Below the pieces are notes generated by a model. The model was not told the origin of the DNA. It did no database searches and saw only the letters and a list, made by a program, of their open reading frames with translations. 64,000 nt of DNA from Chara braunii (taxonomy: Eukaryota; Plantae; Charophyceae), in assembly GCA_003427395.1 (NCBI GenBank), contig BFEA01000003.1, forward strand, positions 2,340,909 through 2,404,908, given 5' to 3'. The translations under genes were made by a program, and so were the position numbers. Below are positions 47,076 through 47,133 of the stretch, in pieces. Each line of letters opens with the position of its first letter. Position 1 is the first letter of the stretch.

Positions 47076-47133
47076 CAAACTGTTTCGTCGGAGTTTCACC
47101 GACTCATCAGGAGGATGAACCCTCAACAGTCTG
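47076..47133 (-). ncRNA. Type III hammerhead ribozyme
   Basis: Minus strand reads CAGACUGU-U-GAGGG UUCA UCCUC-CUGAUGA-GUCGG UGAAACU CCGAC-GAA-ACAGUUUG. All three stems pair and the core is intact. Confidence 0.9.

Follow-up and report, generated by a model that had tools for sequence, protein, structure and literature searches.

Genomic type III hammerhead ribozymes (HHRs) are known mainly from the long terminal repeat (LTR) retrozymes of flowering plants, in which two LTRs of ~300–400 bp each contain a ribozyme and are accompanied by a tRNA-Met primer-binding site (PBS), a polypurine tract (PPT), and 4-bp target duplications; Ty3-gypsy elements act as helpers, and a genome holds tens to about a hundred motifs (PMC4918200). 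Metazoan non-LTR retrozymes, on the other hand, carry type I hammerheads in regular tandem units of 150–400 nt and are related to the pseudo-LTRs of Penelope-like elements (PLEs) (10.64898/2026.07.22.740005; PMC4918200). For algae, the retrozyme papers—which predate the Chara genome—mention ‘isolated examples’ of hammerhead motifs. In the streptophyte alga Chara braunii, PLE families with hammerheads and a microsatellite bias have been published, among them Chlamys-2_cBra with a ‘canonical 3′-HHR’; Naiad/Chlamys elements attain copy numbers in the tens of thousands without hammerheads, which may merely parasitise these elements (PMC8557442). In full-text searches, that study (Craig et al. 2021) was the only one found to mention C. 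braunii hammerheads, and only those of PLEs; no paper on a type III family of this kind was found. Here, we analysed a 64,000-nt stretch of the C. braunii genome (contig BFEA01000003.1; henceforth, the window), in which a 134-nt insertion on the minus strand (47139..47006; copy A) harbors a complete type III hammerhead. Copy A is very probably a truncated member of an abundant Chara repeat family, and we interpret it, at a probability of roughly 0.6, as a 5′-truncated, non-coding, non-LTR retroposon that inserted by target-primed reverse transcription and whose sense-strand hammerhead would process the RNA of the element.

The hammerhead occupies positions 47133..47076 of the minus strand and is made of three helices, with helix III open and helices I and II closed by loops. 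In 5′-to-3′ order, it consists of the 5′ strand of stem III (CAGACUGU; 47133–47126), the cleavage nucleotide U at 47125 as the last letter of a GUU triplet (predicted cut at 47125/47124), stem I (GAGGG/UCCUC with loop UUCA; 47124–47111), the core CUGAUGA (47110–47104), stem II (GUCGG/CCGAC with loop UGAAACU; 47103–47087), the GAA element (47086–47084), and the 3′ strand of stem III (ACAGUUUG; 47083–47076). Stem III counts 8 bp, one G·U pair included. All features required of a hammerhead core are present, namely C3-U4-G5-A6-N7-G8-A9, G12-A13-A14, the A15.1-U16.1 pair (A47083 with U47126), the G10.1-C11.1 pair (G47103 with C47087), and an NUH triplet. A previous reading of this DNA, made from the sequence only, had called an intact type III motif with this very core and these stems and loops, and every one of these parts is indeed there.

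Independent support came from the Rfam model RF00008 (Hammerhead_3), which aligned over model positions 1–54 of 54 with all pairs standard and scored 47.4 bits (E 2.6e-9 when 601 nt were searched and 8.7e-8 for 20 kb). Thus, the model match proposed as a check by the sequence-only reading was obtained, yet it fell 1.1 bits short of the gathering score of 48.5, which is why a gathering-mode Rfam scan of the whole window listed no hammerhead, but U6 only; the motif was recovered in E-value mode alone. The core and the three helices of copy A agree with RF00008, and the letters of its two loops are similar, while its GUU triplet departs from the commoner GUC, a variant that accounts for 7% of family depth. 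In addition, the minimum-free-energy fold is a three-way junction for both the 58-mer and the entire 134-nt insertion. Taken at the level of sequence and predicted structure, the motif is a bona fide-looking type III hammerhead for which self-cleavage is predicted: since the catalytic nucleotides are all intact in copy A as well as in the family consensus, a sense transcript should self-cut after U47125.

Two details of the loops call for caution. Loop 1 (UUCA) is Watson–Crick complementary to UGAA in loop 2 of copy A, as had been pointed out before, and a match of this kind arises by chance in ~1.6% of cases (our own arithmetic: four registers × 1/256). The complementarity is lost in two decayed copies of the window (B and C, see below) and, while real, is weak evidence. 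Similarly, the 5-bp stem I holds for copy A and not for the family: the fifth pair is a G·U peculiar to copy A, whereas 93% of family depth has a G at place 47115, leaving a 4-bp stem I with the loop GUUCAG.

To place copy A within the genome, Logan contigs of two DNA runs and raw reads of two oligo-dT RNA-seq runs were aligned to positions 47000–47145 (146 letters) at ≥80% likeness. This yielded 11,156 and 12,062 matching contig pieces in the two DNA runs. Summed word depth peaked at 3.3–4.1 million over 47060–47095, with individual listed contigs at 8–50; such summed depth does not equal copy number, but it puts the family at thousands of members or more, possibly around 10^5. The DNA is clearly that of Chara, in line with the earlier assignment to an algal genome: four DNA runs from 2018 contain 60–92% of the words of the locus, and the eleven best homologs of a neighboring reverse transcriptase are all C. 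braunii proteins. The motif had been placed ‘outside any recognisable autonomous element’, a description to be revised, as the family to which it belongs is a very abundant and dispersed repeat whose ends are defined. The call for related copies elsewhere in the genome was answered by the thousands of contig pieces together with an independently assembled copy (locus L008, below), albeit with no both-sides covariation within the family.

Both ends of the family are informative. Left of 47028, the loose-end consensus equals the tail of copy A with few differences and reads ...GACGA followed by TATATATA in four of four runs (agreement 0.67–0.82), arguing that the 3′ end is fixed and abuts (TA)n family-wide. 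On the 5′ side, depth drops steadily from 2.97 million at 47095–99 to 0.14 million at 47135–39, and loose ends at 47096, 47114, 47119, and 47123 enter TA repeats; these are 5′-truncated copies, many of them cut within the ribozyme. Past 47139, a minority (~75 contigs from each run, and 396 reads from one of the RNA runs) shares one upstream sequence (30 nt, agreement 0.6–0.81) that is not (AT)n, implying that the element is longer upstream and that copy A is truncated. A search of the window with a 20-nt upstream extension taken from the reads, allowing up to 3 mismatches, returned no match, and the full-length element was not recovered. A 3′ end that is fixed, a 5′ end truncated to varying extents, and a preferred target give the family the hallmarks of a target-primed retroposon.

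Copy A conforms to this picture. It lies between two (TA)n tracts and ends in ...GTGACGA. Its 6-nt leader (ATTATG, 47134..47139, minus strand; family: ATTCTG, with the family letter in 96% of depth at place 47136) abuts (AT)n at the 5′ truncation point, and its 70-nt non-coding 3′ tail (47006..47075, minus strand), through which the family consensus runs, stops just before (TA)n; the same tail is present in another decayed copy of the window (copy D) and at L008:3824-3921. Tandem Repeats Finder reported (TA)17.5 on the 3′ side (46969..47003), a target or primer-annealing tract, and (AT)29.5 followed by (AG)22.5 on the 5′ side (47138..47240). As both flanks are (TA)n, a target-site duplication is unreadable, and the (AG)n at 47196–47240 is a microsatellite rather than a positioned PPT. 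Because the 5′ truncation fell only 1–6 nt upstream of the ribozyme, the entire hammerhead survived. Copy A is a dead-on-arrival fragment, that is, an ordinary truncated copy and not a working element, and the message of this particular locus is a modest one: a truncated copy that happens to have kept its entire ribozyme. A 243-aa open reading frame (ORF) that spans the ribozyme (46527–47258, minus strand) was dismissed, for it runs through microsatellites and has no Pfam match. Likewise, when the translated element was compared with 5.8 billion proteins, no candidate ORF across copies emerged, and the exact 33-nt ribozyme pattern had no match in JGI metagenome contigs.

According to our preferred reading, copy A would have arisen in a (TA)n microsatellite through target-primed reverse transcription of a template RNA bearing the hammerhead on its sense strand ~70 nt from the fixed 3′ end. 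By annealing to (TA)n DNA at a nick, the (UA)n beside the tail could prime reverse transcription, and reverse transcriptase and endonuclease would be supplied in trans by an autonomous, microsatellite-preferring element, possibly a PLE or a LINE. The ribozyme, in turn, would trim read-through or head-to-tail transcripts to unit RNAs with 5′-OH and 2′,3′-cyclic phosphate ends, which might then be religated into circles, as in retrozymes. That cleavage has a real role in the life cycle of the family seems probable to us; circular intermediates are more doubtful. Cleavage would split the ribozyme, and yet complete ribozymes are found in genomic copies, so the template must have been uncut or religated RNA. 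Religation into circles, as in retrozymes, would explain most simply how a ribozyme can be active and still be inherited.

Is the ribozyme maintained by the family, or is it just carried along? The family consensus retains all invariant core nucleotides and all three helices, and inside the ribozyme it differs from copy A at a single place, the aforementioned 47115, where the closing G·U of helix I becomes G/G (93% of depth). Among variants that account for at least 5% of family depth, those in helix II are four CpG transitions, two of which keep a G·U pair and two of which break the pair. The remaining ones fall on U7, on two positions of loop 2, on the cleavage nucleotide H (U becomes C or A, either of which is allowed), and on stem III, in changes from G·U to G-C. 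All of these sites tolerate change. None of the 13 invariant positions is hit, against a chance expectation of ~2.6 hits at ~0.2 listed sites per nucleotide. Furthermore, at the CpG that covers G12 and C11.1, the tolerated change alone (to G·U at 10.1-11.1) reaches the threshold and the inactivating one does not. This pattern of variants matches what selection on master copies would be expected to leave, and is not statistically strong. Finally, there are sub-families in which one and the same ribozyme stands between differing flanks (loose ends at 47079 and 47121; copies B and C), which points to the ribozyme as a conserved module.

These data bear on the strongest rival explanation, namely that the family is as described but the hammerhead a passenger, with spread independent of RNA cutting and a ribozyme that persists because the master copies are young. 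Such a scenario would fit the fact that 5′ truncation leaves most genomic copies without a complete ribozyme, and it has a precedent in the hammerhead-free multiplication of Naiad/Chlamys elements, whose authors suggest HHR parasitism (PMC8557442). It sits less easily with the retained core and helices, the avoidance of the core by common variants, the asymmetry at the G12/C11.1 CpG, and the exchange of flanks around a constant ribozyme, and we regard it as rather unlikely.

Transcription of the family offers a further angle. In both RNA runs (X9 and X10), 0.06–0.07% of the oligo-dT RNA-seq reads match the family. The ratio of reads with the first mate on the plus strand to those with the first mate on the minus strand was 5.0 (X9) and 5.3 (X10) in the tail (47030–34), 2.2 and 2.5 at 47095–99, and 0.96 and 0.98 at 47125–29, upstream of the cleavage site. 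For the minority strand, the profile tracks that of the DNA. If the libraries follow the usual convention, the excess is ribozyme-sense RNA, and its loss upstream of the cut is what one would expect of polyA-selected 3′ cleavage products, a hint only. Within the tail, two positions (47012 and 47029) showed A-to-G differences in RNA reads with the first mate on the plus strand only (4–16% of those), which were absent from both DNA contig sets and may reflect unassembled paralogs or an RNA-level change.

Several points weigh against a cleavage-dependent retroposon. The strand convention was assumed, and the shift from 5:1 to 1:1 is gradual and could reflect which copies are transcribed. As to the RNA ends at 47125/47124 that had been proposed as a check, no pile was seen there, nor any place where many molecules begin or end, bearing in mind that oligo-dT libraries are poor for such fragments. 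DNA 5′ ends are not piled at the cleavage site either, arguing that cleaved linear RNA is not the main template. Compensatory changes within the young family were not found; the sole both-sides change is a G·U to U-A in helix III of the decayed copy B. Given that Naiad/Chlamys thrive without hammerheads, the ribozyme could after all be a passenger. No autonomous partner with the same tail or upstream extension turned up in the window or in eight further Chara loci (181 kb). The size of the family, too, is read from depths that are no copy numbers. As for circles, joints at which the sequence ‘goes back’ occur in RNA, yet mostly also in DNA contigs, and a religated monomer would read the same as the genome; the proposal of a circular-RNA-derived origin thus gained no direct support. 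The joints in DNA contigs contain short TA linkers, and one of the two units is shortened in those listed. Being present in DNA, they represent genomic head-to-tail insertions and are no proof of circles.

A more far-reaching version of our reading would make the family a third kind of retrozyme—a tiny type III retroposon whose self-cleaved RNA circle, (UA)n included, primes at nicked (TA)n and thereby both targets and seeds microsatellites. We consider this version speculative and, on balance, unlikely. If true, type III hammerheads of the viroid-like kind would have ridden on non-LTR retroelements in streptophyte algae earlier than on the LTR retrozymes and viroid-like RNAs of flowering plants.

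Since C. braunii PLEs carry hammerheads of their own, we asked how copy A relates to the PLE next to it. This element (~56800–49858, minus strand) comprises a gag-like zf-CCHC ORF (54913–54221), reverse transcriptase pieces down to 50811, and a 3′ end in (CT)n(CA)n at ~49858; copy A lies 2.7 kb beyond that end on the same strand. The eleven best matches of a 355-aa piece of its reverse transcriptase, all of them C. braunii proteins, share 34–58% identity, and the element matches the Chlamys-2_cBra type of Craig et al. (PMC8557442). Its hammerhead (55818–55767, minus strand; 17 bits on RF00163) is a minimal type I motif composed of CCCC, CUGAGGA, helix II, CGAAAC, a near-palindromic helix III, GUC, and GGGG. 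The surroundings of relatives of its reverse transcriptase make up the eight C. braunii loci L001–L008, and seven of them (L001–L005, L007, L008) share the minimal type I architecture with a palindromic helix III (ACGCGU): L001:10551-10627; L002:12801-12877 and 15956-16030; L003:12378-12454; L004:8865-8941; L005:8797-8873 and 14194-14270; L007 ~252 (minus strand); and L008 ~13505 and ~6705 (minus strand). The statement that PLEs carry minimal type I motifs is thereby borne out for the window PLE and seven relatives, whose motifs correspond to the ‘canonical 3′-HHR’ of Chlamys-2_cBra (PMC8557442). In three loci, the motif is present in two copies, 3.2–6.8 kb apart; those of L005, at a distance of 5.4 kb, flank an ORF as pseudo-LTRs. 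Helix II differs between loci (CUGCC/GGCAG, CUGUCG/CGACAG, CCGCU/AGCGG, AUCUG/CAGAU, ACUUG/CAAGU), and its preserved complementarity appears as clear covariation.

Could copy A then be a fragment or derivative of a PLE, its ribozyme stemming from a PLE pseudo-LTR such as that of the permuted-domain element 2.7 kb away? The proximity of a PLE with a gag-like zf-CCHC ORF, the published Chara PLEs with hammerheads and microsatellite bias (PMC8557442), and a 2026 preprint that derives animal non-LTR retrozymes from PLE pseudo-LTRs (10.64898/2026.07.22.740005) all speak for the idea, as do 5′ truncation and partial tandems, both of them typical PLE features. Indeed, the PLE hammerheads (including Chlamys-2_cBra) and the type III family have much in common—the same genome, residence on a retroelement, microsatellite bias, 5′ truncation, and partial tandems. 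The ribozymes themselves are unlike, however: the minimal type I motifs with their palindromic helix III contrast with the full three-helix type III of copy A, in which stems I and II are closed, and the Chara type III family bears no likeness to the local PLE ribozyme. Moreover, neither the tail nor the upstream extension of the family is matched in the window PLE and the eight PLE loci, and the window PLE ends in (CT)n(CA)n rather than (TA)n. On these sequence grounds, the type III family would be a lineage separate from the PLE hammerheads, and descent of copy A from a PLE is quite improbable. Mobilization of the family in trans by some PLE may nonetheless occur and is compatible with the target-primed retroposon that we favor.

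An even less probable origin is a classical plant LTR retrozyme, of which copy A would be a remnant (solo LTR), or an integrated viroid-like circular RNA. The type III topology, loops resembling an Rfam consensus built largely from plant sequences, and a host in the plant lineage are what such an origin would predict. The remaining parts are missing. Direct repeats within 45400–48900, that is, within 3.5 kb, are microsatellites only, in agreement with the earlier notion that no LTR pair surrounds the motif; the tRNA-Met PBS (TGGTATCAGAGC, ≤1 mismatch) has one match only in the window, at 3046, which is 44 kb away; and no second intact type III hammerhead exists in the window, where the nearest relic is 1.8 kb off, inside a satellite. 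Lacking LTRs, a tRNA-Met PBS, and a second ribozyme, copy A is not a classical retrozyme, and a 134-nt insertion bounded by (TA)n, from a family with LINE-like 5′ truncation, speaks against a solo LTR or a viroid-like integrant.

The term ‘retrozyme-like’, used in the sequence-only reading, hence applies loosely—to a non-coding retroelement with a hammerhead—and not in the sense of LTRs, a tRNA-Met PBS, or paired ribozymes. Like the plant LTR retrozymes, the Chara family is non-coding, non-autonomous, of the plant lineage, and carries a type III hammerhead on the RNA sense strand with loops of the same general kind; it differs from them in its fixed 3′ end in (TA)n, its LINE-like 5′ truncation, and its thousands to possibly 10^5 copies. 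With metazoan non-LTR retrozymes it shares the non-LTR, non-coding, non-autonomous, hammerhead-bearing constitution, some head-to-tail arrangements, and a proposed dependence on the reverse transcriptase of another element. It is set apart from these by its type III ribozyme and by being mostly dispersed and truncated in microsatellites, with a single copy at the locus. What appears to be new here is a non-LTR, microsatellite-targeted, type III retrozyme-like retroposon and putative kin of the plant retrozymes. Here, a streptophyte alga has a plant-type hammerhead on a retroposon that lacks LTRs and targets microsatellites, a combination that links two known classes. The family, which is met in thousands of different contexts and well covered by RNA reads, bears on the origin of the ribozymes of retrozymes and viroid-like RNAs. 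It also lends itself, as a natural system, to the question of what use a hammerhead is to its retroelement, with the consequences on view at very high copy number in tandem joints, in 5′ ends, and in how the copies relate to microsatellites.

Least probable are a host-recruited ribozyme acting on the neighboring gene—copy A lies 120–250 nt past the stop (46888) of a CtIP/Sae2-like ORF, but on the opposite strand and as one member of a repeat family with thousands of members—and a chance match, which is excluded by the E-value of 8.7e-8 in 20 kb and the related copies. At the end of the ORF in question (46364–46888, plus strand), Pfam identifies a CtIP/Sae2 C-terminal domain (PF08573, E 2.8e-6); the ribozyme copy is antisense to this ORF.

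Further copies in the window were found by repeat search and low-stringency BLASTN; all three are decayed and lie on the same strand as copy A. Copy D (37746..37852, minus strand; BLASTN, sequence, and alignment) consists of a ribozyme with a broken core and 50 nt of tail and is 69% identical; its first letter corresponds to ribozyme nucleotide 1, and it runs out in (CT)n. Copies B (45279..45335, minus strand; alignment) and C (42373..42430, minus strand) reside inside a GATT/AATC satellite. In copy B, the core is reduced to AUGAA and stem III has a U-A where copy A has its G·U. Copy C is a duplicate of B within a ~700-nt segmental repeat of the satellite, whose segmental duplication copied the decayed ribozyme insertion along. 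The satellite as such (~40000–46000) contains ~700-nt higher-order duplications, for instance 44925–45615 versus 42023–42709 at 73.6% identity. A weak colinear BLAST match at 7565–7633 (plus strand), in coding-like sequence, was dismissed as chance. Copies A (47133), D (37852), and B/C (~45335, ~42430), three independent cases, have their starts no more than a few nucleotides from ribozyme position 1 despite a family consensus that continues upstream. The shared start may mark a 5′-end hot spot or a module junction.

The (TA)n tracts tell a similar story. At 48531..48537 (plus strand), a pattern search located GTGACGA, the last 7 nt of the family tail, interrupting (TA)n in opposite orientation, probably an extremely 5′-truncated insertion judging by its sequence; of the six (TA)≥8 tracts in the window, only two bear the GTGACGA terminus. 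Within the eight Chara loci (181 kb), there is one truncated copy of the type III family, the independently assembled L008:3824-3921, which begins in loop 2, ends in ...TTTGACGA, and is flanked by TATACATATAT and TATATA. The other seven loci (164 kb) have no copy and 6 (TA)≥8 tracts, as compared to 6 such tracts in the 64 kb of the window, a distribution that fits a (TA)n target preference.

Some minor observations concern the PLE loci and the remainder of the window. At L002:15923-15960 (BFEA01000730.1), ~140 nt before an N run, CTGTCTCTTATACACATCT is followed by its own reverse complement, which together form the palindrome of a Nextera mate-pair junction adaptor; this is an assembly artefact that creates a false boundary of the second pseudo-LTR copy of that PLE. 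Upstream of the PLE in two loci (window 56847–57114, both strands; L001:7239-7488), a ~260-nt hairpin-like stretch scored 55 and 53 bits with the MIR533 model, under its gathering score of 80; it may be an inverted repeat conserved in the PLE family. Lastly, a U6 snRNA gene is located at 27985–28085 (plus strand; 81.6 bits), and a weaker U6-like match (53.8 bits) lies at L001:5469-5569 (minus strand), a few kb from the PLE of that locus.

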